Source: Macrostomum lignano
Taxonomy: Eukaryota
Length of the DNA stretch: 64,000 bases
Direction of reading: 5' to 3'
Assembly (NCBI GenBank): GCA_002269645.1
Contig: NIVC01000636.1
Location: 248,001-312,000 of the forward strand
In this document: positions 1,762-63,911 of the stretch, one piece after another
Layout: every line of letters begins with the position of its first letter
How positions within the stretch are numbered: the first letter of the stretch is position 1
Translations under genes and position numbers: made by a program
The notes under the pieces: generated by a model
Seen by the model: only the letters and a program-made list of their open reading frames with translations
Told to the model about the DNA's origin: nothing
Database searches by the model: none

Positions 1762-4700
1762 ATGTCGAAGGACGGCAAAAAGCCTTACAATGCGGAGGCG
1801 GAGCGCGCCCGCATCGCCCGGCTGTTCAAGCAGCTGGACAAGGACGGCGACGGCCGCATCAGCGCCTCGGAGCTCAGCGCCGCCCTGAAGCAGCAGTACG
1901 GCCAGGAGGCCAAGCGACTGGAGGCGGCCGAGCGCGTGATCCAGGCCAGCGACTCAAACGCGGACGCGGGCCTCGATATGGACGAATTCGTCCGCTACGT
2001 CACCGATCAGAACAGGCGGCTCCGCCTGGCCTTCAAGGAGCTGGACAAGAACAAGGACGACCGCATCGATGCCGAGGAGATCCAGGCGGCCATGCTGGAG
2101 CTCGGCATCAAGCTCAACAAAGCAGAGGCTGAGCAGCTGCTCAACAAACTCGACAAGGACGGCTCGCTGAGCATTAATTATGAGGTGAGTGGCTGAGGCC
2201 TGGCGCTGGCCCATTTCGGGCCCTGGATGAGTCGCATGGAGAGGCAGCGGGCCCTGGATGATCCGCATGGAGAGGCAGCGGGCCCTGGATGAGCCGCATG
2301 GAGAGGCAGCAGGCCCTGGATGAGCCGCATGGAGAGGCAGCGGGCCCTGAATGAGCCGCATGGAGAGGCAGCGGGCCCTGGATGAGCCGCATGGAGAGGC
2401 AGCGGGCCCTGTATGAGCCGCATGGAGAGGCAGCGGGCCCTGGATGAGCCGCATGGAGAGGCAGCGGGCCCTGGATGAGCCGCATGGAGAGACAGCGGGT
2501 CTTTGATGAGCCGCATGGAGGGACAGCGGGCCCTGTATGAGCCGCATGGAGAGGCAGCGGGCCCTGGATGATCCGCATGGAGAGGCAGCGGGCCCTGGAT
2601 GATCCGCATGAAGAGGCAGCGGGCCCTGGATGAGCCGCATGGAGAGGCAGCGGGCCCTGGATGAGCCGCATGGAGAGGCAGCGGGCCCTGGATGAGCCGC
2701 ATTGAGCTTCATAATAATCCCTGTATTTTTGCGTTGTCCGCACTCCGCCATCCATCTTGTTTGCTCAGGTCGCATTAATACATCGGTTGCCCCCAGTGAC
2801 CCGGGACTACGGAAAGGGTAAATAGTGTGTTATGGTGTGAGCTAATACCCAGATTATTATTAATAACGTTTAAATATCGGCTGCTGGCATTGTATGCCGC
2901 TCTGCTTTAGAGATGTTGGACCTGCCACATGCTCACACGCTGCATGTACGTGGCGTGGCGGAGCCACTGATTGCCCGCTTGTCACTGTTGTGTCTTCGCC
3001 GCATTTTTATTGTTAGGCCTTCATCATAGCTGTTGGCTTCCAGCAGCCCCCTCGTATTCTGCTTAATGTACTTTTATTTTATACTTTTTCTTGGATGTAA
3101 ATTCATTTTGTTGTACCGGTACGAACCCGTTGATTTGGTTCTGTTTCGGATTGGGATCACTGCTCCCAAGTCCATTGATGGCACTATGATCATAATGGGA
3201 CAATTCCCCTAACTCCTTAAATCACACCCTTCATAACAGGATAATTCTCCCAATTCCCTCAGTTGCACCCTAACCATAATGGGATAATTCTCCCAACTCC
3301 CTCAATCGCACCCTAATCATAATGGGATAATTCTCCCAACTCCCTCAATCGCACCCTAATCATAATGGGATAATTCTCCCAACTCCCTCAATCGCACCCT
3401 AATCATAATGGGATAATTCTCCCAACTCCCTCAATCGCACCCTAATCATAATGGGATAATTCTCCCAACTCCCTCAATCGCACCCTAATCATAATGGGAT
3501 AATTCTCCCAACTCCCTCAATCGCACTCTAATCATAATAGGATAATTCTCCCAACTCCCTCAATCGCACCCTAATCATAATAGGATAATTCTCCCAACTC
3601 CCTCAATCGCACCCTAACCATAATGGGATAATTCTCCCAACTCCCTCAATCGCACCCTAACCATAATGGGATAATTCTCCCAACTCCCTCAATCGCACCC
3701 TAGTCATAATGGGATAATTCTCCCAACTCCCTCAATCGCACCCTAACCATAATGGGATAATTCTCCCAACTCCCTCAATCGCACCCTAATCATAATGGGA
3801 TAGTTCTCCTATCGCGCAGGAGTGGCGCGACTTCCTGCTGCTGACGGGCCGGCACTCGGTAGATGAGATCTTCATGCTGATGCGCCGAGCCTCCAGCTTC
3901 GACATCGGCGAGAGCTTCGTGATCCCCGACGATTACACACCGGAGGAGCGGCAGTCCGGCGTGGCCTGGAAGACGCTCGTCTCCGGCGGCCTGGCCGGCG
4001 CCGTTTCCCGCAGCGCCACGGCGCCGCTGGACCGCCTGAAGGTGGCCTGGCAGGCCAGCGCCGGCTCCAAGGACAGCCACGGCGCCAAGGCCTCGATGTG
4101 GCGCGGCATCGCCGGCATGGTGACAGAGGGCGGCGTGGCCAGTCTGTGGCGCGGCAACGGCGTCAACTGCATCAAGATTGCCCCGGAGTCCGCCATCAAG
4201 TTCCTGGCCTACGAGACCTACAAGGGCCTGATTGTGGGCGAATCAAAGCGGCCGGTGAGGCTTACCTGGATCCTGCTTTCTCCTGTTTAGGATATTTGTA
4301 ATTACTTATCTTGAGGGCTGCCTTTTGATTAGATCCCATTTTAGGAGGATCAGTAAATCTCTATATGCGGAAATTGGCAGATCCCCATTTTTGAATAATC
4401 AGCAGATCCCCATTCGGGAAAATCCCAAATCCCCATTTAGAGAATCGGGAGATCCCATTTGGGAGAATCGGCAGATCCCCATTTAGGAGAATCTGCAAAT
4501 CCCCATTTAGGAGAATCGGCAAATCCCTATTTGGAAGAATCGGCAGATCCCATTTAGTAGAATCGGCAGATCCCCATTTAGTAGAATTGGCAGATCCCCA
4601 TTTGGTAGAATCGGCAGATCCCCATTTGGTAGAATCGGCAGATCCCCATTTGGGAGAATCGGCAGATCCCCATTTAGTAGAATTGGCAGATCCCCATTTG

Positions 4701-7120
4701 GTAGAATCGGCAGATCCCCATTTGGTAGAATCGGCAGATCCCCATTTGGTAGAATCGGCAGATCCCCAATTAGTAGAATTGGCAGATCCCCATTTGGGAG
4801 AATCGGTAGATCCCCATTTGGGAGAATCGGCAGATCCCCATTTGGGAGAATCGGTAGATCCCCATTTGGTAGAATCGGCAGATCCCCATTTGGTAGAATC
4901 GGCAGATCCCCATTTGGGAGAATCGGCAGATCCCCATTTAGTAGAATTGGCAGATCCCCATTTGGTAGAATCGGCAGATCCCCATTTGGTAGAATCGGCA
5001 GATCCCCATTTGGGAGAATCGGCAGATCCCCATTTAGTAGAATTGGCAGATCCCCATTTGGTAGAATCGGCAGATCCCCATTTGGTAGAATCGGCAGATC
5101 CCCATTTGGTAGAATCGGCAGATCCCCATTTAGTAGAATTGGCAGATCCCCATTTGGGAGAATCGGCAGATCCCCATTTGGGAGAATCGGCAGATCCCCA
5201 TTTGGGAGAATCGGTAGATCCCCATTTGGTAGAATCGGCAGATCCCCATTTGGGAGAATCGGCAGATCCCCATTTAGTAGAATTGGCAGATCCCCATTTG
5301 GTAGAATCGGCAGATCCCCATTTGGGAGAATCGGCAGATCCCCATTTGGGAGAATCGGCAGATCCCCATTTGGGAGAATCGGCAGATCCCCATTTGGGAG
5401 AATCGGCAGATCCCCATTTGGGAGAATCGGCAGATCCCCATTTGGGAGAATCGGCAGATCCCCATTTGGGAGAATCGGCAGATCCCCATTTGGGAGAATC
5501 GGCAGATCCCCATTTGGGAGAATCGGCAGATCCCCATTTGGGAGAATCGGCAGATCCCCATTTGGGAGAATCGGCAGATCCCCATTTGGGAGAATCGGCA
5601 GATCCCCATTTGGGAGAATCGGCAGATCCCCATTTGGGAGAATCGGCAGATCCCCATTTGGGAGAATCGGCAGATCCCCATTTGGGAGAATCGGCAGATC
5701 CCCATTTGGGAGAATCGGCAGATCCCCATTTGGGAGAATCGGCAGATCCCCATTTGGGAGAATCGGCAGATCCCCATTTGGGAGAATCGGCAGATCCCCA
5801 TTTGGGAGAATCGGCAGATCCCCATTTGGGAGAATCGGCAGATCCCCATTTGGGAGAATCGGCAGATCCCCATTTGGGAGAATCGGCAGATCCCCATTTG
5901 GGAGAATCGGCAGATCCCCATTTGGGAGAATCGGCAGATCCCCATTTGGGAGAATCGGCAGATCCCCATTTGGGAGAATCGGCAGATCCCCATTTGGGAG
6001 AATCGGCAGATCCCCATTTGGGAGAATCGGTAGATCCCCATTTGGGAGAATCGGTAGATCCCCATTTGGGAGAATCGGCAGATCCCCATTTGGGAGAATC
6101 GGCAGATCCCCATTTGGGAGAATCGGCAGATCCCCATTTGGGAGAATCGGCAGATCCCCATTTGGGAGAATCGGTAGATCCCCATTTGGGAGAATCGGTA
6201 GATCCCCATTTGGGAGAATCGGCAGATCCCCATTTGGGAGAATCGGCAGATCCCCATTTGGGAGAATCGGCAGATCCCCATTTGGGAGAATCGGTAGATC
6301 CCCATTTGGGAGAATCGGCAGATCCCCATTTGGGAGAATCGGCAGATCCCCATTTGGGAGAATCGGCAGATCCCCATTTGGGAGAATCGGTAGATCCCCA
6401 TTTGGGAGAATCGGCAGATCCCCATTTGGGAGAATCGGCAGATCCCCATTTGGGAGAATCGGCAGATCCCCATTTGGGAGAATCGGCAGATCCCCATTTG
6501 GGAGAATCGTTAGTCCCTATTGTTGAAGCAAAACTTTATCCCTCTCTTCCCTCCAGGTGCAGCTGCACGAGAAGTTCGTTGCCGGCGCCCTGGCCGGGGC
6601 CACGGCGCAGACGCTGATCTACCCGCTGGAGGTGCTGAAGACGCGGATGTGCCTGCGCAAGACCGGCCAGTACTCATCGCTGTTTGACTGCGCCCGCAAG
6701 GTGTACGCGGAGGGCGGAGCGGCCATCTTCTACCGCGGCTACGTGCCCAACATGCTGGGCATCCTGCCATACGCCGGCATTGACCTCGCCCTGTACGAGA
6801 CCTTCAAGCAGACCTACCAGAAGTGGCGCGGCAACGAGAGCGGCAGCCCGCCCATCTACGTGTCCCTGGTGGCCGGTGCCGTGTCCTCCGTGTGTGGCCA
6901 GGTGGCCACCTACCCGCTGGCTCTGGTGCGCACCAAGCTGCAGGCCCGCATCGGCGGCGGCGGCGGCCTCGGCAGCATGTTCGCCGACATCCTCAAGCGG
7001 GAGGGCGTCCGCGGCCTCTACCGTGGCATGGGGCCGAACATGCTGAAGGTGATCCCCGCCGTCAGCATCTCCTACGCCACCTTCGATGAGATGAGGCGCA
7101 GGCTGGGGCTCATCAAGTGA
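1762..7120 (+). CDS. SCaMC: Calcium-binding mitochondrial carrier (SCaMC / SLC25A23-25 family, ATP-Mg/Pi carrier), ~473 aa, 3 coding exons
   Basis: Exons 1762-2184, 3820-4254 and 6557-7120, both introns GT-AG phase 0. Four EF-hand loops: [36 protein letters not shown], and [11 protein letters not shown]|E across intron 1. Carrier signatures PLDRLK, PLEVLK and degenerate PLALVR. Family motifs [23 protein letters not shown] and [20 protein letters not shown] at 7174-7179. Confidence 0.95.
2215..2702. repeat. Intronic 31-nt tandem repeat (GAGCCGCATGGAGAGGCAGCGGGCCCTGGAT), SCaMC intron 1
   Basis: About 15 near-identical copies read directly. Confidence 0.95.
3190..3805. repeat. Intronic 43-nt tandem repeat (ATAATGGGATAATTCTCCCAACTCCCTCAATCGCACCCTAATC), SCaMC intron 1
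   Basis: About 14 copies. The last degenerate copy runs into the 3' splice site at 3819. Confidence 0.95.
4370..6510. repeat. Intronic 24-nt tandem repeat (CAGATCCCCATTTGGGAGAATCGG), SCaMC intron 2
   Basis: About 88 copies, degenerate at the 5' edge and nearly perfect in the core. Source of the spurious 676-aa [11 protein letters not shown]. Confidence 0.97.
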
Positions 7121-38339: not shown

Positions 38340-39170
38340 TGAAAGGATAGAGGGGAGAGAGCGAAGAGAGGGAAGAGAGGGGCGAGGTGGGAGAGAGAGG
38401 AGAGAAGGAAGAGAGGGAAGAGAGGGGAGAGAGAGGAGAGAAGGAAGAGAGGGAAGAGAGGGAAGAGAGAAGAGAGGGAAGAGAGGGAAGAGAGAAGAGA
38501 GGGAAGAGAGGGAAGAGAGAAGAGAGGGAAGAGAGGGAAGAGAGGGAAGAGAGAAGAGAGGGAAGAGAGGGAAGAGAGAAGAGAGGGAAGAGAGGGAAGA
38601 GAGGGAAGAGAGGGAAGAGAGGGAAGAGAGGAGAGAGAGGGAAGAGAGGGAAGAGAGGGAAGAGAGGGAAGAGAGGAAAGAGAGGAGAGAAGAGAGGGAA
38701 GAGAGGGGAAAGAGGGGGGAGATGGGAGAGAGAGGAGAGAAGGAAGAGAGGGGAGAGAAGGAAGAGAGGGAAGAGAGGGAAGAGAGGGAAGAGAGGGAAG
38801 AGAGGGAAGAGAGGGAAGATAGGGAAGAGAGGGAAGAGAGGGAAGAGAGGGAAGAGAGGGAAGAGAGGGAAGAGAGGGAAGAGAGGGAAGAGAGGGAAGA
38901 GAGGGAAGAGAGGGAAGAGAGGGAAGAGAGGGAAGAGAGGGAAGAGAGGGAAGAGAGGGAAGAGAGGGAAGAGAGGGAAGAGAGGGAAGAGAGGGAAGAG
39001 AGGGAAGAGAGGGAAGAGAGGAAGAGAGGGAAGAGAGGGAAGAGAGGGAAGAGAGGGAAGAGAGGGAAGAGAGGGAAGAGAGGAGAGAGAGGGAAGAGAG
39101 GGAAGAGAGGAGAGAGAGGGAAGAGAGGGAAGAGAGAGAAGAGAGGAAAGAGAGGGAAGAGGGGAGAGGC
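38340..39170. repeat. Polypurine repeat (GAGAGGGAA)n and variants
   Basis: Almost purely G/A over about 830 nt. Confidence 0.95.
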
Positions 39171-39840
39171 AGAGTGTGGAGCAGAGAGATATGAAATCGA
39201 AGAGCACTGAGCAAATAATTGAGGTGATGGCAGAAGCAGATAAGTTTGCAGCTAATTTGATCAGCTCTAAAAGCTCTCCCTCTACTCAAAACTCCCAGGT
39301 CCAAGGCGGAACCGGTCAGGTGGCCGCAGCAACTGCTCTGCAGTCGGGGCCACCGCTATCTCTGTTATCTGTCTTGTAGTTTTTCAGCTGGACTTTATCA
39401 GAAGATTTTGTGCAAACTGAAATCTAAAGAAGCGCTTTATTGCTTTCGCAATAAAAGCAACAGCGAGGCTCCCTTGCTGATAGCTGCTTCTGGGGAGCTC
39501 CGAAAACTTTGCAGCACGCATGCTGTTTAAGACAACAAAGAGGGTATTATAAGCGTTGAAATATTGACATTTGACATCGGGGCAAAGCGGTGGATTAAGC
39601 GGAGGGGGGCACAGCTGATCCTTCCGGGCAGATCCCCCACAAGAAGAAAAAGCAAGGCAGTTCTTTAAGCCTGAGTGGCAGCGGGGCTGCACGGGAACTG
39701 CACGCAAGGGCGGCTCTGGCTGCTTGGATCCGGCTTTCGGGCTGACTGGAAAGACAGGCTGAGACTGAGTTGCTGTTCACCTGGCCTTGTGCCGCCGCTT
39801 GTGGTGGGCCAGCACAGACTTTTGTATTTTGTTTCTTCCT

Positions 39841-40728
39841 GGATTGTTTGACTCATGGGCTGTTTGAGTCATGGACGGTTTGAGTCATGGATTGTTTGAG
39901 TCATGGATTGCTTGAGTCATGGACTGGTTGAGCCTTGGATTGTTTGAGTCATGGATTGTTTGAGTCATGGGCTGTTTGAGTCATGGATTGTTTGAGCCAT
40001 GGGCTGTTTGAGTCATGGACTGTTTGAGTCATGGACGGTTTGAGTCATGGACTGTTTGAGTCATGGACGGTTTGAGTCATGGACTGTTTGAGTCATGGGC
40101 TGTTTGAGTCATGGGCTGTTTGAGTCATGGACTGTTTGAGTCATGGATTGTTTGAGTCATGGATTGTTTGAGTCATGGGCTGTCTGAGTCATGGACGGTT
40201 TGAGTCATGGATTGTTTGAGTCATGGATTGTTTGAGCCATGGGCTGTTTGAGTCATGGGCTGTTTGAGTCATGGGCTGTTTGAGTCATGGACTGTTTGAG
40301 TCATGGATTGTTTGAGTCATGGATTGTTTGAGTCATGGACTGTTTTAGTCGTGGATTGTTTGAGTCATGGACTGTTTGAGTCATGGATTGTTTGAGTCAT
40401 GGACTGTTTGAGTCATGGATTGTTTGAGTCATGGACTGTTTGAGTCATGGATTGTCTGAGTCATGGACGGTTTGAGTCATGGATTGTTTGAGTCATGGAT
40501 TGTTTGAGCCATGGGCTGTTTGAGTCATGGGCTGTTTGAGTCATGGGCTGTTTGAGTCATGGACTGTTTGAGTCATGGATTGTTTGAGTCATGGGCTGTT
40601 TGAGTCATGGATTGTTTGAGTCATGGACTGTTTGAGTCATGGACTGTTTGAGTCATGGGCTGTTTGAGTCATGGACGGTTTGAGTCATGGACTGTTTGAG
40701 TCATGGATTGTTTGAGTCATGGGCTGTC
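39841..40728. repeat. 16-nt tandem repeat (TGTTTGAGTCATGGAY) containing a consensus AP-1 site (TGAGTCA) in nearly every unit
   Basis: About 55 units read directly. Confidence 0.95.
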
Positions 40729-41124: not shown

Positions 41125-42470
41125 GATACCCGCCATCTATCAAGAAGATACCCGCCATTCACCGAGAAGATACCCGCCATCTATCAAGAAGATACCCGCC
41201 ATTCGCCGAGAAGATACCCGCCGTCTATCAAGAAGATACCCGCCATTCACCAAGAAGATACCCGCCATTCGCCGAGAAGATACCCGCCGTCTATCAAGAA
41301 GATACCCGCCATTCACCAAGAAGATACCTGCTATCTATTAAGAAGATACCCGCCATCCATTAAGAAGATACCCGCCATCCATTAAGAAGATACCCGCCAT
41401 TCATTAAGAAGATACCCGCCATCCATCAAGAAGATACCCGCCATCCATCAAGAAGATACCCGCTATCCATCAAGAAGATACCCGCCATCCATCAAGAAGA
41501 TACCCGCCATTCATTAAGAAGATACCCGCCATCCATTAAGAAGATACCCGCCATCCATTAAGAAGATACCCGCCATCCATTAAGAAGATACCCGCCATCC
41601 ATTAAGAAGATACCCGCCATCCATTAAGAAGATACCCGCTATCCATCAAGAAGATACCCGCCATCCATCAAGAAGATACCCGCCATCCATCAAGAAGATA
41701 CCCGCCATCCATTAAGAAGATACCCGCCATCCATCAAGAAGATACCCGCCATCCATCAATAAGATACCCGCCATCCATCAAGAAGATACCCGCTATCCAT
41801 CAAGAAGATACCTGCCATCCATCAAGAAGATACCCGCCATCCATCAAGAAGATACCCGCCATTCATCAAGAAGATACCTGCCATCCATCAAGAAGATACC
41901 CGCCATCCATCAAGAAGATACCCGCCATCCATCAAGAAGATACCCGCCATCCATCAAGAAGATACCCGCCATCCATCAAGAAGATACCCGCCATCCATCA
42001 AGAAGATACCCGCCATCCATCAAGAAGATATCCGCCATCCATCAAGAAGATACCCGCCATCCATCAAGAAGATACCCGCCATCCATCAAGAAGATACCCG
42101 CCATCCATCAAGAAGATATCCGTCATCCATCAAGAAGATACCCGCCATCCATCAAGAAGATACCCGCCATCCATCAAGAAGATACCCGCCATCCATCAAG
42201 AAGATACCCGCCATCCATCAAGAAGATACCCGCCATCCATCAAGAAGATACCCGCCATCCATCAAGAAGATACCCGCCATCCATCAAGAAGATACCCGCC
42301 ATCCATCAAGAAGATACCCGCCATCCATCAAGAAGATACCCGCCATCCATCAAGAAGATACCCGCCATCCATCAAGAAGATACCCGCCATCCATCAAGAA
42401 GATACCCGCCATCCATCAAGAAGATACCCGCCATCCATCAAGAAGATACCCGCCATCCATCAAGAAGATG
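41125..42470. repeat. 22-nt tandem repeat (CCATCCATCAAGAAGATACCCG)
   Basis: About 60 copies. Confidence 0.96.
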
Positions 42471-44024: not shown

Positions 44025-44545
44025 GCTTGAGGGAATCTTGCTTGAGGGAATCTTGCTTAAGGGAATCTTGCTTGAGGGAATCTTGCTTGAGGGAATCTTG
44101 CTTGAGGGAATCTTGCTTGAGGGAATCTTGCTTGAGGGAATCTTGCTTGAGGGAATCTTGTTTCAGGGAATCTTGCTTGAGGAAATCTTGCTTGAGGGAA
44201 TCTTGCTTGAGGGAATCTTGCTTGAGGGAATCTTGCTTGAGGGAATCTTGCTTGAGGGAATCTTGCTTGAGGGAATCTTGCTTGAGGGAATCTTGCTTGA
44301 GGGAATCTTGCTTGAGGGAATCTTGTTTCAGGGAATCTTGCTTGAGGAAATCTTGCTTGAGGGAATCTTGCTTGAGGGAATCTTGTTTCAGGGAATCTTG
44401 CTTGAGGGAATCTTGCTTGAGGGAATCTTGCTTGAGGGAATCTTGCTTGAGGGAATCTTGTTTCAGGGAATCTTGCTTGAGGGAATCTTGCTTGGGGGAA
44501 TCTTGCTTGGGGGAATCTTGCTTGAGGGAATCTTGCTTGAAATAA
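44025..44545. repeat. 15-nt tandem repeat (CTTGAGGGAATCTTG)
   Basis: About 34 copies. Confidence 0.95.
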
Positions 44546-44596: not shown

Positions 44597-45382
<786 letters not shown>

Positions 45383-46059: not shown

Positions 46060-46925
46060 TCATTGGCCCAGCAGTGTACAAAGACACAAGGGCCCAGCAA
46101 TGTACATACACACAAAGACACATGTACATAGACACATACACAAGGGCCCAGCAATGTACATAGACACAAAGACACAATGTACATAGACACATACACAAGG
46201 GCCCAGCAATGTACATAGACACAAAGACACAAGAGCCCAGCAATGTACATTGACACAAAGACACAAGAGCCCAGCAATGTACATAGACACAAAGACACAA
46301 TGTACATTGACACAAAGATACAAGAGCCCAGCAATGTACATTGACACAAAGACACAAGAGCCCAGCAATGTACATTGACACAAAGACACAAGAGCCCAGC
46401 AATGTACATTGACACAAAGACACAAGAGCCCAGCAATGTACATAGACACAAAGACACAATGTACATTGACACAAAGACACAAGAGCCCAGCAATGTACAT
46501 TGACACAAAGACACAAGAGCCCAGCAATGTACATTGACACAAAGATACAAGAGCCCAGCAATGTACATTGACACAAAGACACAAGAGCCCAGCAATGTAC
46601 ATAGACACAAAGACACAATGTACATTGACACAAAGACACAAGAGCCCAGCAATGTACATTGACACAAAGACACAAGAGCCCAGCAATGTACATTGACACA
46701 AAGACACAAGAGCCCAGCAATGTACATTGACACAAAGACACAAGAGCCCAGCAATGTACATTGACACAAAGACACAAGAGCCCAGCAATGTACATAGACA
46801 CAAAGACACAATGTACATTGACACAAAGACACAAGAGCCCAGCAATGTACATTGACACAAAGACACAAGAGCCCAGCAATGTACATTGACACAAAGATAC
46901 AAGAGCCCAGCAATGTACATATACA
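46060..46925. repeat. ~34-nt tandem repeat (GACACAAAGACACAAGAGCCCAGCAATGTACATT) with shorter deletion variants
   Basis: Read directly. Confidence 0.94.
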
Positions 46926-48231
46926 CAAAAGTTCAGCAATGTACATAAACCCTTTAGCCCAGCAACATACTTCAATACATAGACCCAAGAGCCCAGTAAA
47001 TGTGCATAGACCCCTTATTTATCACGATAGATAAGAAGGCTTCATCCCTTTTCACCTTTTATTGGTTTTTACTAGCATGTATTGAAGCCGAATCTCGGGA
47101 CAAATGTGATGCAGAACACACAGATATTCAATCTTCTGCTGAGCCATAGCCAAAGTGTGCTGGGATTTCACTTCAGAATACTACAGTATAGTCTTCATTC
47201 CCAAGCAGATCGAAATGATCCAAGGTGAATTCGTGTAATTTGCACGGGAGTGAAAAACGTGTTTTATTAATTTAATGCATAACGTTACTGTAAAAAAATA
47301 ATTTGATCTTAAGAAGCCTCTGACTTCGTATTTCAAATTTCAAAGCGAGCTGGAGTCTCTCTTAGATAAATTTTAAGGATTTGTTAATTGAGATTCAAAG
47401 CAAAGGCAGTGGAAAATCTCCGGCTTTAATTTTCGGCAAGCGCGCAAAGAGAGAACTGAGCTTGCCTTATTATTCAGTCTCAGACTCTCTGCGTCATCAG
47501 CCACTTCTGGCCGGGACTTGAAAGCTTGAATCAAACAAAGAAGACTCAAACGAATTTAGACCCAGGTACAGGTAATGCCAGTCAACCAGACCGGACTCAA
47601 AGCTCGTGAGCACCAAGTTATCAATAAATCAATAAGGTGTGAATTTGAATTGCGATTGTTTTGTTTCATTCAACAAAAATATATATTAGAAAGTTATGAA
47701 AGTGATTCCCGGATATATACTTAGAAATACTTGTTTTTGTGTACTTTTATTTTCAACCGCCGTGATATACTTATCTATCCTGGGTAGAAAAACAAAACTG
47801 ATTTTTGATTACTGAAACTGGAATTAGCATCCAGCATCTGAGATGCGGCTGGGTTGCTAGGGCCTACAGACTAATCTTGGTCACAAATCGCTGCAGCACA
47901 GCTGAGCTCTGCTCCTGCTCTCACTTTGGCTGATTATCTAACTCACTGGCTGAGTCCACACTGAGCTTTCCTTGCCTAATCCCCGGGTGTCTGGGGGAGA
48001 CTGGGAATAGAGAGGCTGGGCGCCTCATCAGTCGGATTGCGCGCTGAGGCTGGGACTCGGACAGGAGTTGGCGCTGAACTTTTTTGGCATCCCGATGGGA
48101 TTCGAGCTCTGACAGCGAGATTCGAGATTTGCTCTGGGGATTTGGGCTGGAGTGACGGGAGACACGCGGTGAGCATTTGCTCCTGCCGTTCATCAATACA
48201 ATTTCCCCTTTAATCAGTTGGTTTGTTAATG

Positions 48232-48622
48232 GGATTGAGATTGATCAACTGATCTATGGGTGAGATTGATCAACTGATCTATGGGTGAGATTGATCAACT
48301 GATCTATAGGTGAGATTGATCAACTGATCTATAGGTGAGATTGATCAACTGATCTATAGGTGAGATTGATCAACTGATCTATAGGTGAGATTGATCAACT
48401 GATCTATAGGTGAGATTGATCAACTGATCTATAGGTGAGATTGATCAACTGATCTATAGGTGAGATTGATCAACTGATCTATAGGTGAGATTGATCAACT
48501 GACATATAGTGAGATTGATCAACTGATCTATAGGTGAGATTGATCAACTGATCTATAGGTGAGACAGATCAACTGATCTGTAGGTGAGATTGATCAACTG
48601 ACATATAGGTGAGATTGGTCAG
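48232..48622. repeat. 25-nt tandem repeat (GAGATTGATCAACTGATCTATAGGT) containing the palindrome TTGATCAA
   Basis: About 15 copies. Confidence 0.94.
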
Positions 48623-49051: not shown

Positions 49052-49966
49052 TCAGTTGCCCCTGACGGTGGCCAGCAGGCGGGCGGCGCACGGCCGGCTG
49101 CAGCCGATCACGTCGGCGGCCACGGGGTCGGCAGGCGCGTGTGCGGCCCGCACGGCGGCCAGCAGGGCGTCGGCCTGGCGGCCGCAGGTCACCGGCTCGG
49201 ACTCGCGCAAGCAGAGGTCGGCGGCCACGGTGACGAAGGCGCGGTCGCAGGCGCCGGCTTCGATGCCGTAGTGGCCCGCGCAGGCGGCGCACAGGCGGTG
49301 GCTGTCACACAAGGCGGCCGCCTCAGCGTCCATTGCCAGGCCGAAGCGGCGCCGCACCTGGGCGCAGTTGGCCAGCGGCGTTCCGGCCGGAAAGCAGGCG
49401 CCGCCCTCGGCTTCGGCTGCCTCCTCGCCTTCGGCGTCGTGCCGAGCCAGCATCCCGGCCAGCCGGCGCAGGTCGCGGTCCCGAGCCGCGTTCTCCGCTG
49501 CCTGCGGCGGCGGCGCCACGGCGGCGGCCCGCTTCGGCGGAGACGCGTCGGGGGCCTCGGCGGCCTCGGTGACCTCCGCGGCGGCCTCGGCGGCGGCAGC
49601 TGCGGTGGCTGCCACGGAGCGCAGCTCGGCGTTCTCGGCACGCAGGCGTCGCAGCTCGTGGGCCTGGCGGCGGAGCTTCCGGACGGCGGTGCGGCCGGCC
49701 CGGACGGCCTCGGTCAGGGCTTCGTCCAGCTCCAGGCGTCGCCGCAGGCCACCGAGCGCAGCCTCGCCTGCCAGCTCGGCAGAGTTGGACGCCAACGCCA
49801 GCTGGCTGCCCTCGGCCCGACGGTCCAGCGCGAGGTCGCCAGCGTACACACCGTCGTCGAAGTCGTCGTCGAAGTCGCCTTCCGCGTCGGAGATTCGGGC
49901 GAAGGCACTCAGCAGCAGCAGCAGCAGCAGCGGCAGCGGCCGCAGGCAGGTGTAGCGGACAGTCAT
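49052..49966 (-). CDS. Intronless secreted protein, 304 aa: signal peptide, acidic stretch, coiled coil, Ala-rich linker and C-terminal conodipine/group IX sPLA2-like Cys domain with a degenerate active site
   Basis: Signal LRPLPLLLLLLLSAFA. The segment LCDSHRLCAACAGHYGIEAGACDRAFVTVAADLC has the same spacing as the conodipine motif C-D-x-H-D-x-C-Y-x-C-x-x-H-F-G-x5-C-D-x-A-F-x6-L-C (recalled, not searched). Ten Cys in residues 191-293. Codon style matches the other genes. Confidence 0.8.
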   Translation of the reverse strand: MTVRYTCLRPLPLLLLLLLSAFARISDAEGDFDDDFDDGVYAGDLALDRRAEGSQLALASNSAELAGEAALGGLRRRLELDEALTEAVRAGRTAVRKLRRQAHELRRLRAENAELRSVAATAAAAAEAAAEVTEAAEAPDASPPKRAAAVAPPPQAAENAARDRDLRRLAGMLARHDAEGEEAAEAEGGACFPAGTPLANCAQVRRRFGLAMDAEAAALCDSHRLCAACAGHYGIEAGACDRAFVTVAADLCLRESEPVTCGRQADALLAAVRAAHAPADPVAADVIGCSRPCAARLLATVRGN

Positions 49967-52734
49967 GTCTCTGCGCTCCGCTGTGTCAATCCGCTCCCCT
50001 TCTCGCCAAAAAGCGCCGCTCCAGTCTTTTAAGGCTTTCCCAGACTTATCTGAGCTGCACCGGGGCGGGGTGGCGAGATGGCGCGGCGGGTGGCCGTTTG
50101 TTTATCCCCACTAGTCCTGTCCCCGCCTGCCCTCGGGCCTGGACCAATGACAGCCGGCTCGCGTACTGCGGCATGCGGACTGGCACCTGCTGTTTGACTG
50201 GGAAGGGGCGGCAGTTCCCCAGGGCTGAGCTGAGGGGAGCAGTTTGAGCGCTGGGAGAGAGATGAGGAGAGATGAGAGAGATGAGATGAGGATCTGCAGC
50301 TGGGAATGCGGAGGGGGCCAGGTCCCATCCCGACACTTACAGGCTTTTGTTTCCTCACGTGGGGACAGAAAACAGAAGGCAGACAGACAGAAACACTGCA
50401 CTGCCGGCACTGAATACGGGGGGGGGGGGTACGGGCTGAGAATAAGGGAACTGCTCAGTCTCACAGGACCTCAGCTCCGACACGACGTATAATTAAGAGT
50501 ATAATGCAAGACATGCGGGACTGCTGTGCTAATTTCTGCTGCAATTTCTGAATTGATCTCCAGCCTCGCAGTTTTTCCCAGCTCTCGAAGCGCCCGCTGA
50601 CGTCCCACCTCCGTCCCGGAGTGCAGCGGGGTACAGCGGCCCGGCGGTCAGTCTGGAGTCTGTACTCTGGCATTGGTTTGAGTCAGGTGTGCCAGAAAGC
50701 GGAAAACCCTCTGCCTGGGCCAAGATAGACTTTGAGAAGGGCTGGAATGATGAGGGCTAGGGGAAAGGAGACGCATGCTGACAGCAATATGCATCTTGCT
50801 CCATGGCCTGAGTTGCCATGGCAACCGTGACAGAATTGGCGAGGCGTAGAGGCACGAGCGCGAGCCTGGAAGAAGAGGGAGCGGAAAGAGGGGAGCTGAG
50901 CAAACCGAGCCAAACTTTGCAGTTTTGTCCCTGAGAGCATCGGCCTCGTTGCTGGGAGAGACGGGAGCGACTTGAGCTCAGCTTCAAGCTTTGTTGTCCA
51001 TGAAAATTAGATGGATGTGCGGCAATTATTCATTTTTTCGAGCTCTCCTTTGAGCTCGCGGCACCGCCCTCCCAGCAATGTTTGCCTTTCCTCAACGACT
51101 CTTTGATGTCCGGGCCGATCGTGGCAATTTTCAGTCAAAAAAGCTGATCTCGAATGTACTTTAGTGGCCGCTGCCTTCCCAGATTTTTCCCGGGCATTAA
51201 GTCGGGGGATCTTGTGGGATTAGGAAAATTGCAGGCCGCATCGTAAAACTCTGCTGAGCTCGGATCGCCCCGGCGAGCCCATTGTGCAGCTATAATTGGA
51301 TTCCGAGGGCCGCCGCTGCCGCTCGCTCCGCCGTCCCCGGCCGAAATCTCGGCAATCGGATGGCGGCGCGGGGCACCGGGGAACTCTTTGAGGAAGCCGG
51401 CCTGTCCCGGCCAAGCTCTGAAACCCTGGGGATTTCAGTCAGTCTGCTTCCCCTTCCACTCTCTCTCGGTGCTAGTGAGCAGATTTGCCAGCCGCCTAAG
51501 GCATCAATTATTCCTCGTGTCCCTGTGTTATCCTCCTTCCTGAGAGCTGAGGGACCGGCTGCACTATTGCAGCCCCTCAGCCTCTCCAGCTCATGCCCGG
51601 CCTCATGTCTTGCATCCGCCGTTCTTGAGCCTCTCATTGTGAATTTTTAACGGACTTTCAAGCTCACGATTTCAGCCCATTCGCAAGTTCATGTGCGCAA
51701 TCGGAGTCTGCGTCAATTATCACAGATCTGCAAATGTCTGGTCCACGCTCTCTCCTGATGAGGAACAGAGCAACCGCAGCCCCACAATGCATGCAAGTTT
51801 TGACGCAGATGAGAAAGCAAGAGCTGGCTGTACTCTGTAAGTGGAGTGCGCCGACTCGATTGAGAATTTATCAATCAATTCATTTTTAACAGCATGAAAA
51901 AAAGCATTTGTCTGCCCACAGATGCCGTCTAGACAGCAACATGGGTCAGGACATACTCAGCAGAATTGGCAGGAGCAGCAGCCGAGCACTCAGCGCTACT
52001 CAGCGATTTGAGTAGCAATCAAAATCCGGCAGGGGCGCTCGGCACTAGCTGCAGGGAATTCATCCCATTTTTAATCTCCAATCTGCCATGCAGCGCCCGC
52101 TAAGTGATGACGCATCAATGTCAAAATTTTTCAGCCTATAACAAGCTTCTATTATGAATCCAAAGAAGGTCGCGAGTTCGAGTACCACACTAGACTTGTC
52201 GAGAAATTGTATCCTACGCAGGGAATGTGTCCCAAGGCGGAAGTATGCGGATGAGCAATTGCCATGGCAACCTCGGCATAAAGCCGTATTTAACAGTCAG
52301 ATGAAATGACACACACAGGCCGCGCTGGGTGCCATGAAATATAAATGCGCAGCGGGCTACTGCAGGCAGCCAGTTGAATAGGGGCAGGCGGGTATTGAGC
52401 CAAGCAGCGGCCAGGGCCAACTTGAAGCACCAATAAAATTGAGAAAAAAACTGTAGCCTGCGGCGTCGCTCCATCATCCTGCCGGAGTCGCCTGCCCAGG
52501 TGAGGGGATTGGGCCGTGATAAATTAAATTACAGCTCAGCGAGAGGTCTATGCGGGCTGGCAAGTACAGTTGGACACAATTAAGCAGGGCAAGTGCTCTA
52601 CGCTGGTACGAGTATAGAGGCTGAATCGCGGATCATTGGATTTTATGCGTTCATTTCTTCTACTTATAGTAACAAAGAAGCGCGAGAAATTCTTTTTTTA
52701 ATCTTTGATAAATATCATCAATATTTACCCCCTC

Positions 52735-54215
52735 CCAAGTGACTTGATTCTCGTGAACTGGAACCCCAAGTGACTGGATTCTCGTGAACTGGAACCCCAA
52801 GTGACTGGATTCTCGTGAATTCGAACCCCCCAAGTGACTGGATTCTCGTGAATTCGAACCCCATTAAGTGACTGGATTCTCGTGAACTGGAAACCCCCCT
52901 CCCAAGTGACTGCATCCTCGTGAACTGGAACCCAAGTGACTGGATTCTCGTGAACTGGAACCCAAGTGACTGCATTCTCGTGAACTGGAACCCCAAGTGA
53001 CTGCATTCTCGTGAGCTGGAACCCCAAGTCCTGGATTCTCGTGAACTGGAACCCCAAGTGACTGCATTCTCGTGAGCTGGAACCCCAAGTGACTGCATTC
53101 TCGTGAGCTGGAACCCCAAGTGTCTGGATTCTCGTGAACTGGAACCCCAAGTGACTGGATTCTCGTGAATTCGAACCCCCCAAGTGACTGGATTCTCGTG
53201 AATTCGAACCCCCCAAGTGACTGGATTCTCGTGAACTGGAAACCCCCCCTCCCAAGTGACTGCATCCTCGTGAACTGGAACCCAAGTGACTGGATTCTCG
53301 TGAACTGGAACCCAAGTGACTGCATTCTCGTGAACTGGAACCCCAAGTGACTGCATTCTCGTGAGCTGGAACCCCAAGTCCTGGATTCTCGTGAACTGGA
53401 ACCCCAAGTGACTGCATTCTCGTGAGCTGGAACCCCAAGTGACTGCATTCTCGTGAGCTGGAACCCCAAGTGACTGCATTCTCGTGAGCTGGAACCCCAA
53501 GTGACTGCATTCTCGTGAGCTGGAACCCCAAGTGACTGCTGACTGGATTCTCGTGAGCTGGAACCCCAAGTGACTGCATTCTCGTGACCTGGAACCCCAA
53601 GTGACTGCATTCTCGTGAGCTGGAACCCCAAGTGACTGCTGACTGGATTCTCGTGAGCTGGAACCCCAAGTGACTGCATTCTCGTGAGCTGGAACCCCAA
53701 GTGACTGCATTCTCGTGAGCTGGAACCCCAAGTGACTGCATTCTCGTGAGCTGGAACCCCAAGTCCTGGATTCTCGTGAACTGGAACCCCAAGTGACTGC
53801 ATTCTCGTGAACTGGAACCCCAAGTGACTGCATTCTCGTGAGCTGGAACCCCAAGTCCTGGATTCTCGTGAACTGGAACCCCAAGTGACTGGACTCTCGT
53901 GAGCTGGAACCCCAAGTGACTGCATTCTCGTGAACTGGAATCCCAAGTGACTGCATTCTCGTGAGCTGGAACCCCAAGTCCTGGATTCTCGTGAGCTGGA
54001 ACCCCAAGTGACTGCATTCTCGTGAGCTGGAACCCCAAATGACTGCATTCTCGTGAGCTGGAACCCCAAGTGACTGCATTCTCGTGAACTGGAACCCCAA
54101 GTGTCTGGATTCTCGTGAGCTGGAACCCCAAATGACTGGATTCTCGTGAGCTGGAACCCCAAATGACTGGATTCTCGTGAGCTGGAACCCCAAGTGTCTG
54201 GATTCTCGTGAACTG
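52735..54215. repeat. ~31-nt tandem repeat (GTGACTGCATTCTCGTGAGCTGGAACCCCAA and variants)
   Basis: About 47 copies, with some higher-order structure. Confidence 0.95.
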
Positions 54216-54789: not shown

Positions 54790-55160
54790 GGTGGGTGATT
54801 GGGGGAGTGGGGGATTTGGGAAGTGGGGGATTGGGAAGTGGGGATTGGGGAGTGGGGGATTTGGGAAGTGGGGGATTGGGAAGTGTTGGATTGGGAAGTG
54901 TGGGATTAGGAAGTGGGGATTTAGGAAGTGGGGATTGGGAAGTGGGGGATTGGGAAGTAGGGGATTGGGAAGTGGGGGATTGGGAAGTGGGGGATTTGGG
55001 AAGTGGGGGATTTGGGAAGTGGGGGATTGGGAAGTGTTGGATTGGGAAGTGTGGGATTGGGAAGTGGGGATTGGGAAGTGTTGGATTGGGAAGTGTTGGA
55101 TTAGGAAGTGGGGATTTGGGAAGTGGGGATTTGGGAAGTGGGGGATTGGGAAATGGGGGC
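54790..55160. repeat. G-rich 14-15-nt tandem repeat (GGGAAGTGGGGGATT)
   Basis: About 25 copies. Confidence 0.93.
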
Positions 55161-55904
55161 TTGAGAGGTGGGAGAACGCGACAATTTTGGGATGCAATCA
55201 TAGTGTAAGCAGCGAGAAACAGAGAAATGTAATTAAAATAAAGTGAAAGAGTCAATTCGGGCAAACGAGAGACTTGAGTGCTGTCGCGACTGCTCAAACC
55301 GCAGCAGCAAAGATAGGGAGCACAAATGGACAGTAAATAAGCAAGGACAAAAAGCATTAATCGGGACTTTATTCCCGCAAAAATCCACGCAATGAGCAGA
55401 AACAAATAAAGGTACAAAAAGTCCGCACCCGCCGCTGCAGACAAGAATTTTTGCTTTTGCAGGCACACCTGCGATGGCAGGCTGGGAGATTGGGCAGCAG
55501 AGGGGGGGGGGCAAAGCGGCCGCAAGTGAGCAGCTCTGAGTACAGGGGGAGATTGCAAGTCCCAGAGAGCAAGACTTTTTGCGATCAGGGGGAGGAGGGA
55601 CAGAAGGAGGAATCCGATTTTATCCCCCCCCCCGAGTGTACACCGGCTGGACGTCGCTAGCCGCGCAGAGCAAGCGGAGATGCTGCAAAGCGCCGATCTC
55701 AGCTGAGGAAGGCGGGCAGGCAGGTGCAAAATCAAAGACAAGACGACAGGAAGAGGACTGAGCGCGGGGCCGGCGATGCAAAGCTATTTTGGGACTCTCC
55801 GAGCATCACAAGCTCCGAGTCCGCATTGAATTTCGTTGTTAAGCCCCCCGCCCATCCCCGGCTGCCTCCCCTCGCGGATTATCCCCAGCAGCTGAGCTGG
55901 AGCT

Positions 55905-56438
55905 TCATCCCTTGGCCTGTGCGGCCAGCCACTCCAGGCCGGCCGTGAGGCCCTCGCCGCTCAGGGCGCAGCAGGCCTGAATGTGCCAGGGGTTGGCCCG
56001 GATGCTGGTGAGGTCCAGCGCCTGGCTGATCTCGGCCGCGGACAGCCGGCCGTTGATGTCCTGCTTGTTGGCGAGCACGAGCAGCCGCGCCCGCTTCAGG
56101 TGGTCCGAGGCGAGCATCTTGTACAGCTCGTCCTTGATGACGGCCAGCCGCTGCCTGTCGGAGGAGTCGATGACGAGGATGATGAAGTCGGTGCTCTGGT
56201 AGTAGGTCTCCCACGTGGCCCGGATGGAGGTCTGGCCGCCCAGGTCCCACATCACGAAGTGGATGTTGCGCCAGCGCAGCTGCTCCACGTTGGAGCCGAT
56301 GGTAGGCGAGGTGTGCACGGCCTCGCCCAGCACCAGCTGGTACAGCACGGTGGTCTTGCCGGCATTGTCCAGCCCGACCAGCAGTACTTTGTGCTCTTGG
56401 GTACCAAAAAGGCTCCACAGCCTGGCTATTATCAGCCC
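55905..56438 (-). CDS. ARL5: ADP-ribosylation factor-like protein 5 (ARL5); the initiator Met is not encoded in this exon
   Basis: After TTGCAG| the exon reads [30 protein letters not shown] (ARL5-type N terminus and P-loop). G3 WDLGGQ, G4 NKQD, G5 CAL. Stop at 55905. No internal introns. Confidence 0.92.
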
Positions 56439-56479
56439 CTGCAAGTTGGCGAGTGCCGTGATTTACTGATAGGCTTCAA

Positions 56480-61930: not shown

Positions 61931-61955
61931 TCATTTGTGGCTATCGCGCCTGCAG

Positions 61956-63911
61956 CACCGCCTGTGGTGCACTGGCTTAGTGCGCCATCTCTGGCGGCGT
62001 CGCAGGCGGCAGGCAGCCATTGTGGCCGCTGCCGTCACCGCCCTGCTGGCGCTCCTGCTGCTGGCCAGCGCCTCGCTCAGAAGGCCGCTGCCGCCGCCCT
62101 TCCAGCTGGAATCCGCCAGCACCATCGAATCCGTTGACCTGTTCGACTCTCGCCGCGATGTCATCGTGCTGCTGCACATGCAGAAGACCGGCGGCTCGCA
62201 CCTCAACCGCCAGCTCGTCTCCGGCTTGCGCCGACCCGACATGCGCTGCCAGTGCGGCCTCGGCGGCCTCGGCGGTGCGCGCCGGCGGAAATGGCGCTGC
62301 AGCTGCCGCAACAGCCGCGGCGACCTGTGGATTGTGAGCCGCTACAGCACCGGCTGGCTCTGCGGCCTCCACGCCGACTTCGCCGCGCTGTCTGCCTGCG
62401 TGCCCGGCCAGCTGGCCGCGCTCGACTCCGACTTTGAGAGGCCGCGCCGCCTCCGCTACGTCACCATGCTGCGCCGGCCGGCCGACCGCTTCCTGTCCGA
62501 GTGGCAGCACGCGCGCCGCGGCGCCACCTGGCGGAAATCGCAGCCCACCTGCCGCGGCCGCCGGCCTCCGCCCTGCCGGACTGGCGACGGCGCCTGGCGC
62601 GGCGTCTCCCTGGCCGAGTTCGCCGCCTGCCGCGCCAACCCGGCGCTGAACCGGCAGGCGCGCATGCTGGCCAACGCCAGCGGCCTGCCCTGCCGGGCCG
62701 TCTTCGCCAACGGGAATCGAACCGCGGACCTACTGCTGGCCAGTGCGCTTCACAATCTGGTAGGGATGGCGGCGTTCGGCCTGACAGAGTGGCAGGTGAG
62801 CGAGCTGCTGGGAAGCTGGGACTTTTATGGAGTTGAGTATCTGGGATATCTGATGGTGTTGAGGATCTGGGATATCTGATGGAGTTGAGGATCTGGGATA
62901 TCTGGTGGTGTTGAGGATCTGGGATATCTGATGGAGTTGAGGATCTGGGATATCTGATGGAGTTGAGGATCTGGGATATCTGATGGAGTTGAGGATCTGG
63001 GATATCTGATGGAGTTGAGTATCTGGGATATCTGATGGAGTTGAGGATCTGGGATATCTGATGGAGTTGAGTATCTGGGATATCTGATGGAGTTGAGGAT
63101 CTGGGATATCTGATGGAGTTGAGGATCTGGGATATCTGATGGTGTTGAGGATCTGGGATATCTGATGGTGTTGAGGATCTGGGATATCTGATGGAGTTGA
63201 GGATCTGGGATATCTGATGGTGTTGAGGATCTGGGATATCTGATGGAGTTGAGGATCTGGGATATCTGATGGTGTTGAGGATCTGGGATATCTGATGGGG
63301 TTGAGGATCTGGGATATCTGAATCTGATGGAGTTGAGGATCTGGGATATCTGATGGAGTTGAGGATTTGGGATACTGAGGGAGCTGTAAAGACTCTTCAA
63401 GCGGATTTGCTGTTGTCACGCGGATGTCACTCCACCAAGCACCACTCTCGGACCCGCGCAGATCCTGACGCAATACCTGCTGAGCAGGCGCCTCGGCCTG
63501 AGCTTCAGCCGCCTGTTCTGGCAGCAGGACGCCACCGTCGCCTCTAATTGGCGCGCCAGCGGCAACTTCAGCCTCGTCGCCGACGCCGGCGACCTCCAGC
63601 AGAGGCGACTGGCGGAGCTCGCCAACCCCGCCGACGCCCGCCTGTACGCAGCGGCCGAGCGGCTGTTTTTCGGCCAGGCCCGCCGCCTGCTGGCTCGGGA
63701 GCCGCTGCTGTCGGCCGGCCAGCGGGCTCGAGTCCGGGACGCCGACTCCGCAATCGGCGGCGACGCACTGACCGCGCTGGCCCGCCGGGTGCTGCTGGAG
63801 CTGGGCGCCGTTGAAGTGGACGACGCCGAGAAGGCAGACATCCGGCGCCGGGTGCGCAAGAAGCTCCTGCGGGCTGGCAACGACGAGGCCGAGTCGGATT
63901 CGAACTCGTGA
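61956..63911 (+). CDS. HS6ST: Heparan sulfate 6-O-sulfotransferase (type II Golgi membrane protein), 2 exons; initiator Met not found
   Basis: Exons ~61956-62795 and 63462-63911, joined by a GT-AG phase-0 intron. Basic cluster RRRRR followed by a hydrophobic signal anchor. 5'-PSB VLLHMQKTGGSHL, WIVSRYSTGWLCGLHADF, 3'-PB TMLRRPADRFLSEWQH, NRQARMLA, FGLTEWQ|ILTQYLL. Stop TGA 63909-63911. Confidence 0.92.
62822..63375. repeat. Intronic 26-nt tandem repeat (GATATCTGATGGAGTTGAGGATCTGG), HS6ST intron
   Basis: About 21 copies. Confidence 0.95.

Follow-up and report, generated by a model that had tools for sequence, protein, structure and literature searches.

The subject of this report is a gene on the minus strand of a 64,000-nucleotide stretch of the genome of the flatworm Macrostomum lignano (contig NIVC01000636.1, positions 248,001 to 312,000; hereafter the window, whose numbering is used throughout). 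The gene is a complete single-exon coding sequence at positions 49052–49966, with 304 codons followed by a stop codon (49052–49054), as read from the list of open reading frames (ORFs) and the sequence. It is genuine, transcribed and intron-less, and it encodes a secreted precursor-like protein. By its sequence, this protein is a member of an undescribed and unnamed spiralian family of secreted proteins that has no Pfam model. The best explanation for the observations as a whole, to which a probability of roughly 0.4 is assigned, is that the protein is a secreted precursor-like molecule carrying a non-catalytic binding module that resembles phospholipase A2 (PLA2). GenBank already listed the gene, as a hypothetical protein; the novelty lies in recognising its family, with an invariant core and a weak signal of PLA2 type.

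The protein begins with a signal peptide and an acidic stretch that evolves rapidly. A conserved heptad-like helix rich in Arg and a Pro/Ala linker containing a conserved Lys-Arg pair follow, and a ten-cysteine domain of ~115 residues ends the chain. Only this domain has relatives; in annelids, a brachiopod and unidentified marine animals it forms the C-terminal end of long, acidic proteins that bear a signal. A first-pass annotation of the window had described the protein as a conodipine-like (group IX) PLA2 pseudo-enzyme fused to a coiled-coil pro-region, and in that account a sound observation was given an over-specific label.

A conserved ten-cysteine domain

The C-terminal domain spans residues 190–304 (49055–49399), as defined from its phmmer relatives, hhalign comparison, an alignment of 11 domain sequences (A5) and substitution rates. 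Its cysteines occupy positions 191, 201, 220, 226, 229, 240, 252, 261, 289 and 293. All ten are conserved in A5: nine form invariant columns, and the second is present throughout, offset by one column in two Macrostomum rows. Five disulfides formed by these cysteines would staple together a small helical bundle. Residues Asp213, Ala216, Leu219, His223, Asp241 and Ala265 are likewise invariant in A5, and Glu215 is nearly so. The only basic cluster of the domain, Arg205–Arg207, lies between its first two cysteines.

Residues 220–244 of the domain, CDSHRLCAACAGHYGIEAGACDRAF, contain the pair His223-Arg224 (49295–49300) as well as Ala227. The histidine position is invariant in A5 and also in every first-exon match from the metagenome loci described below, and the position two residues before it is Asp or Asn in every family member. 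Asp241 (49244–49246), which is invariant in A5, stands directly after the sixth domain cysteine. The residue that follows the invariant histidine is variable, being Arg, Lys, Gln or Leu across A5 and the metagenome loci, and is never Asp. Because no family member of any phylum has a His-Asp pair, the missing pair is a trait of the family and not the Macrostomum-specific loss that the first-pass annotation supposed. Two features do set Macrostomum apart: it has Ala where all other members have Tyr after the fourth cysteine, and Asn-Cys where the relatives carry [DN]-x-C before the second cysteine. No family member has a Gly-rich loop between the first and third cysteines. The domain (cysteines 191–293), the string at residues 220–244, the His-Arg and Ala substitutions with no Asp after the histidine, and the want of an evident calcium loop are thus as the first-pass annotation described them.

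A spiralian family of relatives

An exhaustive phmmer search with residues 188–304 against 1.84 billion representative proteins returned an orthologue (P0002) and five distant relatives (P0003, P0004, P0006, P0007 and P0008), with E-values of 3e-9 to 4e-4. P0003 (649 residues), P0004 (556 residues) and P0006 (664 residues) carry no annotation. P0007 is a fragmentary 170-residue gene model from Capitella teleta (ELU11710.1, CAPTEDRAFT_223090), and P0008 is a 560-residue protein of Lingula anatina (XP_013418513.1), a species that also has a paralogue, XP_013418517.1. NCBI labels the Capitella and Lingula members hypothetical or uncharacterised. The two Lingula paralogues (P0008 and P0009; LOC106179439 and LOC106179442) are at least 90% identical and share one 421-kb scaffold, which indicates a recent tandem duplication in the brachiopod. 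One further phmmer match, the BED zinc-finger protein P0005, was discarded as a repeat-driven false positive. Word-indexed searches with the window protein returned Macrostomum proteins only, and a word-indexed search with the P0004 domain returned only P0004 itself. Pfam assigned no PLA2 or other meaningful family to the window protein, to its domain or to the relatives.

Four long relatives, aligned as A6, are built alike. Behind a signal-like N-terminus come long acidic regions, a K-[RK]-K-R site that is invariant, a conserved helical block in the centre and an acidic linker, and the very C-terminus is taken up by the ten-cysteine domain. When the Macrostomum proteins (A1) were compared with the long relatives by hhalign, a match with a probability of 98.1% (E = 1e-13) was obtained over the C-terminal domain only. 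When scored with a hidden Markov model (HMM) built from the central block, the Macrostomum proteins reached −0.8 and 1.0 bits, which falls within the range of the shuffled null. A resemblance between this block and an E-N-x-x-L stretch at residues 111–126 was considered and rejected, its HMM score lying within the null.

Across the family, then, the ten cysteines, the His, the Asp and a D-x-E-A motif before the third cysteine are shared, together with signal-like N-termini and dibasic sites. The relatives are 556–664 residues long (170 for the Capitella fragment), whereas the Macrostomum protein has 304 residues and lacks their long acidic regions, their invariant K-[RK]-K-R site and their central helical block.

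A metagenome scan added 25 further loci, of which L006–L029 are listed as gutless-oligochaete host contigs; to judge by the sample series, most of the loci probably represent DNA of gutless-oligochaete hosts. A common phase-0 GT-AG intron interrupts the domain in three loci, directly after C-Y-T-C, with domain exons at 511–627 and 2624–2842 (L008), 275–391 and 2015–2233 (L012), and 3007–3123 and 3669–3863 (L024). In contrast with these annelid genes, the Macrostomum gene has no intron within the domain, which therefore implies intron loss or a retrocopy.

Evidence that the gene is genuine

The start codon of the 304-residue ORF is the first possible one after the upstream stop. The kilobase that holds the gene has a G+C content (GC) of 75%, compared with 43–58% in the adjacent kilobases, and GC at codon positions 1, 2 and 3 is 81, 58 and 89%, respectively. 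In such a setting an ORF might be no gene at all but a chance product of a GC island. Indeed, an antisense ORF of 297 residues (49139–50032, plus strand) spans the gene, and several other long ORFs overlap it. The antisense ORF bears no sign of coding and is a product of the 75% GC and 89% third-position GC (GC3), and because stop-free stretches arise here from composition, ORF length alone is no evidence of a gene.

The evidence for the gene comes instead from comparison. The window protein is 98% identical to P0001, the GenBank entry "hypothetical protein BOX15_Mlig014073g3, partial" of M. lignano. The P0001 copy sits on scaffold NIVC01000637.1, which is colinear with the window over 39.4–57.9 kb at 92–98% identity and therefore represents this locus again, from another assembly, haplotype or subgenome. 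On lookup in public assemblies the exact sequence of the window protein was absent, and the 98% copy is the only one on record. Furthermore, there is the orthologue P0002, which is 75% identical to the window protein and whose full-length form, P0011, has a signal peptide of its own. It is encoded on ~1.4-kb contigs, for which the reads came from four sequencing runs (SRR28338163-167). One of these contigs, L001, is colinear with the window from 49784 to 49052 at 82% DNA identity and without an intron, and the DNA similarity ends exactly at the stop codon. The untranslated regions of the orthologous transcript (L001 1–173 and 1065–1452) have no detectable similarity to the window. A coding GC of 77% and a GC3 of 89% are common to both species, so the extreme composition of the gene is older than their split.

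The ratio of nonsynonymous to synonymous substitution rates (dN/dS), estimated by the Nei–Gojobori method between the window gene and its orthologue, is 0.37 overall. It is 1.5 for residues 1–60, 0.18 for residues 61–120, 0.41 for residues 121–188 and 0.16 for the cysteine domain. Together with the orthologue, the end of similarity at the stop codon and the cross-phylum homologues that have kept the cysteines, a dN/dS below one refutes a chance ORF, as does a signal peptide that falls at the first start codon; such an origin is practically excluded. Neither the gene (Mlig014073) nor the family is mentioned in the literature and supplements searched, a search that included the Capitella and Lingula accessions, flatworm conodipines and Macrostomum PLA2.

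Similarity to bacterial and fungal PLA2s

A PLA2-like fold of the ten-cysteine domain is a tentative assignment, somewhat short of probable. The only match of the family profile in the PDB at E < 10 was the Streptomyces PLA2 1faz, at E = 0.18 among 177,635 distinct sequences, and this E-value fell from 0.84 to 0.18 as the profile was deepened. In the alignment, His223 falls on the His of R-H-D and Asp241 on the Asp of I-D-S-A-F, which we take to be the catalytic histidine and its partner aspartate in the enzyme. HMMER and hhalign both pair the aspartates, and three of the family cysteines fall on three of the enzyme's four. On the four solved group XIII/XIV PLA2s the family profile scored 15.1 (1faz), 6.8, 6.0 and 4.4 bits, and on three of these enzymes it outscored every one of 300 column-shuffled profiles; for 1faz, the null maximum was 6.8 bits. 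Similarly, its median score on 79 Streptomyces PLA2s was 13.8 bits, whereas the best of 1000 shuffled sequences reached 7.4.

Structure prediction gives a likewise weak indication of the same kind. The AlphaFold model of the P0004 domain, which rests on three sequences and is of low confidence, has a predicted local distance difference test score (pLDDT) of 58.6, rising to 68–73 in the core. The Foldseek match of highest probability to this model was the actinobacterial PLA2 8k1w (probability 0.30, template modelling (TM) score 0.40, E = 5.2).

The solved group XIII/XIV enzymes (1faz from Streptomyces, 8k1w from Saccharothrix, 7ygk, and 4aup from Tuber) are small, secreted, all-helical and disulfide-bonded, as the domain would be. 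In the alignment with 1faz, the family motif C-x-[RS]-H corresponds to C-x-R-H, the invariant Asp to an Asp, and two cysteines farther on to two cysteines of the enzyme. The solved enzymes offer the closest available comparison for the geometry of His223 and Asp241, which would be carried by adjacent helices, as the His/Asp pair is in secreted PLA2s. The differences are also clear. The enzymes have four cysteines and the family ten; the enzymes keep His-Asp and a strongly conserved stretch after it, both of which the family lacks; and none of the solved examples or Streptomyces sequences compared comes from an animal. The similarity is statistically weak, and by hhalign it is absent.

Several results weigh against a PLA2 fold. 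Comparison by hhalign of the family with the group XIII/XIV alignment gave a score of 10.8 and a probability of 0.1%, and 38% of column-shuffled controls scored at least as high; the targets were the 79 Streptomyces PLA2s and a broader alignment that added the four solved group XIII/XIV sequences. The reverse search, with a PLA2 HMM against the family members, stayed at null level. Pfam PLA2 families, matches to which the PLA2 label would lead one to expect, were absent at E ≤ 10 from the window protein, its domain and the relatives' domains, and at E ≤ 0.1 from the full-length relatives. The family profile matched no canonical group I, II or III PLA2 in the PDB at E < 10, and phmmer of the window protein against PDB sequences found no match. 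Both AlphaFold models are low-confidence models built on three sequences, that of the window domain having a pLDDT of 43.5 and yielding Foldseek matches that are meaningless. For neither model did Foldseek return a significant match; with the P0004 domain model, E-values were 3–10 and the PLA2 match had a TM score of 0.40. The structure search proposed by the first-pass annotation thus found nothing significant, although its match of highest probability was a PLA2. The non-catalytic part of the explanation has a difficulty of its own: a His and an Asp kept so strictly in different phyla might also belong to a functioning active site or a metal site.

On the other side, the PLA2 hypothesis was stated before the searches were made, so the repeated appearance of PLA2s of one type weighs more than the raw E-values suggest; it is no proof.

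Binding or catalysis

In the known secreted PLA2s, the Asp next to the catalytic His holds the catalytic calcium. As no family member has an Asp in this position, the domain most likely binds a partner and does not carry out canonical calcium-dependent lipolysis; the partner would most likely be a membrane, a lipid or a receptor. The part of the first-pass annotation that took the protein for catalytically dead is supported to this extent, since canonical Ca2+-dependent chemistry is unlikely without an Asp after the His; the part that assigned it a PLA2 fold meets only the faint signals above and a negative hhalign comparison.

Alternatively, the domain could be a working, non-canonical lipid hydrolase with His223 and Asp241 as catalytic residues, in which the missing calcium ligand is replaced by the Asp or Asn two residues before the His or by the invariant D-x-E motif upstream. 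Between flatworm and brachiopod, His223, Asp241 and Asp213 do not vary and Glu215 hardly does; dead enzymes often lose residues of this kind. The Asp or Asn two residues before the His is present in every member, and in a relaxed hhalign alignment the family T-D-x-C pairs with S-T-D-x-C of 1faz, a stretch that presumably supplies calcium ligands. At this upstream site, however, Macrostomum has A-N-C, and it has Ala for Tyr after the next cysteine; the His-Asp pair occurs in no member, and no Pfam or PDB PLA2 model reaches significance. Hydrolysis is therefore improbable, and it keeps a small share of the probability in view of the strict conservation, which a catalytic role would explain equally well.

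The conodipine comparison

Conodipines are, like the window protein, secreted, cysteine-rich and of spiralian origin, and the C-x2-H-x2-C pattern of the domain is compatible with the active-site helices of secreted PLA2s. In the first-pass annotation, which took conodipines to have a His in a Cys-flanked helix, the protein had been read as a conodipine-type (group IX) PLA2, turned into a pseudo-enzyme in the flatworm by an Asp-to-Arg change; the specific argument for this was a motif spacing taken to be identical to that of conodipine-M. None of the matches from the word-indexed searches or from phmmer over the 1.84 billion representatives was a conodipine-like protein. The layout of the precursor also differs: conodipines are made as a signal, an alpha chain, a propeptide and a beta chain, have a His-Asp dyad and form a two-chain, disulfide-linked heterodimer with Ca2+-dependent activity (PMC3914837, PMC4278219). 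The window protein, in contrast, has one uninterrupted ten-cysteine domain at its C-terminus, and in place of the dyad His223-Arg224, or His followed by Lys, Gln or Leu in its relatives. A published survey that covered 44 flatworm proteomes and three from molluscs reported group 9 as the only PLA2 group without a homologue (PMC11811501). With an Asp after the His in no family member, there was no local loss for such a change to explain, and conodipine membership is very improbable.

The N-terminal region and precursor processing

The predicted signal peptide (residues 1–23; 49898–49966) has a basic n-region with Arg4 and Arg9, a Leu-rich hydrophobic core from Leu11 to Ala23, whose top 11-residue window reaches 2.9 on the Kyte–Doolittle scale, and small residues at −3 and −1 (Ala21 and Ala23). 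Cleavage is likely after A-F-A, with an alternative predicted cut after residue 28. The orthologue P0011 likewise opens with a Leu-rich signal. An eleventh cysteine of the protein, Cys7, lies inside the signal peptide, and ~165 residues without cysteine separate the signal from the ten-cysteine domain.

The acidic patch DFDDDFDD (residues 31–38; 49853–49876), read directly in the window sequence, is missing from the orthologue, which has a deletion there and another acidic stretch. Shortly after it, a conserved L-A-L-D-R-R motif with a dibasic pair (residues 45–50; 49817–49834) is invariant between the window protein and P0002/P0011, within flanks that have diverged. Residues 68–118 (49613–49765) form an Arg-rich, amphipathic, heptad-like helix by their periodicity and dN/dS: their hydrophobic periodicity peaks at 3.45–3.5 residues, the half-heptad value (p = 0.008 against 1000 shuffles). 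The linker that follows (residues 119–157; 49496–49612) is Ala/Glu-rich and then Pro/Ala-rich. It contains the sole Lys-Arg of the protein, Lys145-Arg146 (49529–49534), which is kept in P0002/P0011 together with its flanking prolines. A short charged segment (residues 158–176; 49439–49495), A-R-D-R-D-L-R-R-L-A-G and then an acidic spacer, is near-invariant relative to the orthologue and leads to the domain.

The signal peptide, the acidic patch, the heptad-like helix and the basic clusters, of which there are eight (RR49, RRR75, RK96, RR99, RR106, KR145, RR167 and RRR205), had all been noted in the first-pass annotation and are all present. Its description of a coiled-coil pro-region captures the conserved helical N-terminal part; the dN/dS of 0.18 at residues 61–120 reflects purifying selection and therefore indicates that this part is more than a disposable pro-region. 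Release by proprotein convertases, also suggested there, is plausible from the conserved Lys-Arg in the Pro/Ala linker, and the window protein contains no R-x-[KR]-R site. By cleavage at Lys145-Arg146, the domain may be freed from the helical N-terminal part in the secretory pathway.

Such features raise the main rival to a PLA2-like binding module, namely that the protein is a prohormone- or granin-like precursor. Peptides released from its N-terminal and central regions would then be the active products, and its ten-cysteine domain, unrelated to PLA2 and of a new fold, would serve in folding, sorting or as a carrier, as neurophysin does in the vasopressin precursor. What the family shares with granin and prohormone precursors is a signal, acidic low-complexity stretches, conserved dibasic sites and, at one end, a folded domain rich in cysteine. 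In the long relatives, the signal is accompanied by very acidic disordered stretches, the K-[RK]-K-R site, more dibasic sites and a central helical block, and the window protein keeps the conserved Arg-Arg (49-50) and Lys-Arg (145-146). The want of a PLA2 signal by hhalign and the reverse HMM search, and of any Pfam family match, suits this explanation too. However, no Pfam family of the granin or prohormone kind was matched, no recognisable amidation-type peptide repeats were seen, and conserved peptide products were not identified in the ten-cysteine family. The N-terminal parts of the Macrostomum proteins and of the long relatives are not homologous, so that any peptide products would be unconserved and the cysteine domain conserved. 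In addition, the PDB profile match and the Foldseek match of best probability are both PLA2s of one type. A prohormone- or granin-like precursor is thus a serious possibility, though on balance an unlikely one.

Genomic surroundings

Satellite-like tandem arrays with periods of 9, 16, 22, 15, 4, 34/159, 25, 31 and 15 bases flank the gene, at 38349–39165, 39840–40727, 41125–42469, 44025–44540, 44597–45381, 46078–46946, 48236–48621, 52734–54215 and 54791–55172. On the GenBank scaffold (L110) their copy numbers are not those of the window, and several long ORFs of the window are only read-through of tandem repeats.

The nearest recognisable neighbour is an intron-less ORF of 179 residues at 55905–56444 (minus strand). 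Its product is a small GTPase of the Arf family (Pfam Arf, E = 1.3e-64), for which the GenBank scaffold carries an annotation as well. Beyond an AT-rich block at 57–62 kb (27–36% GC) comes a GC-rich ORF at 61935–62879 (plus strand) with a borderline Sulfotransfer_2 match, at 22.1 bits for a cut-off of 22. An ORF of 676 residues at 4587–6617 (plus strand) has low-complexity matches to UBA_5 and Cornifin; it probably belongs to neither family and consists of repetitive sequence rich in Pro and Gln.

Implications for the family

Inactive homologues of PLA2 are known, among them snake-venom forms in which the calcium-binding Asp is replaced and the mammalian group XIIB protein. They provide a precedent for what is proposed here, in that the His and its partner Asp are kept, the calcium-binding Asp is lost and binding takes the place of hydrolysis. 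By sequence these homologues are unmistakable members of their respective PLA2 groups, whereas the ten-cysteine family is recognised by no PLA2 model.

An evolutionary account that goes further is doubtful, and is offered as speculation. The domain would be an ancient, spiralian-wide animal offshoot of the group XIII/XIV PLA2 fold. Its calcium-dependent catalysis would have been lost before the split between flatworms, annelids and brachiopods, and it would now form the folded end of a new class of convertase-processed secreted precursors, with Macrostomum possessing a compact, intron-less version.

If the domain is not PLA2-like, the family is still an unannotated, cross-phylum family of secreted proteins whose five-disulfide domain is strongly conserved and which show features of prohormones; one of its members belongs to a laboratory model, M. 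lignano. If it is PLA2-like, it would represent an animal lineage of a PLA2 type whose compared solved members are all bacterial or fungal, in which a whole family, and not one gene, keeps the His/Asp core without the calcium site. It would then inform how enzyme scaffolds turn into binding proteins.

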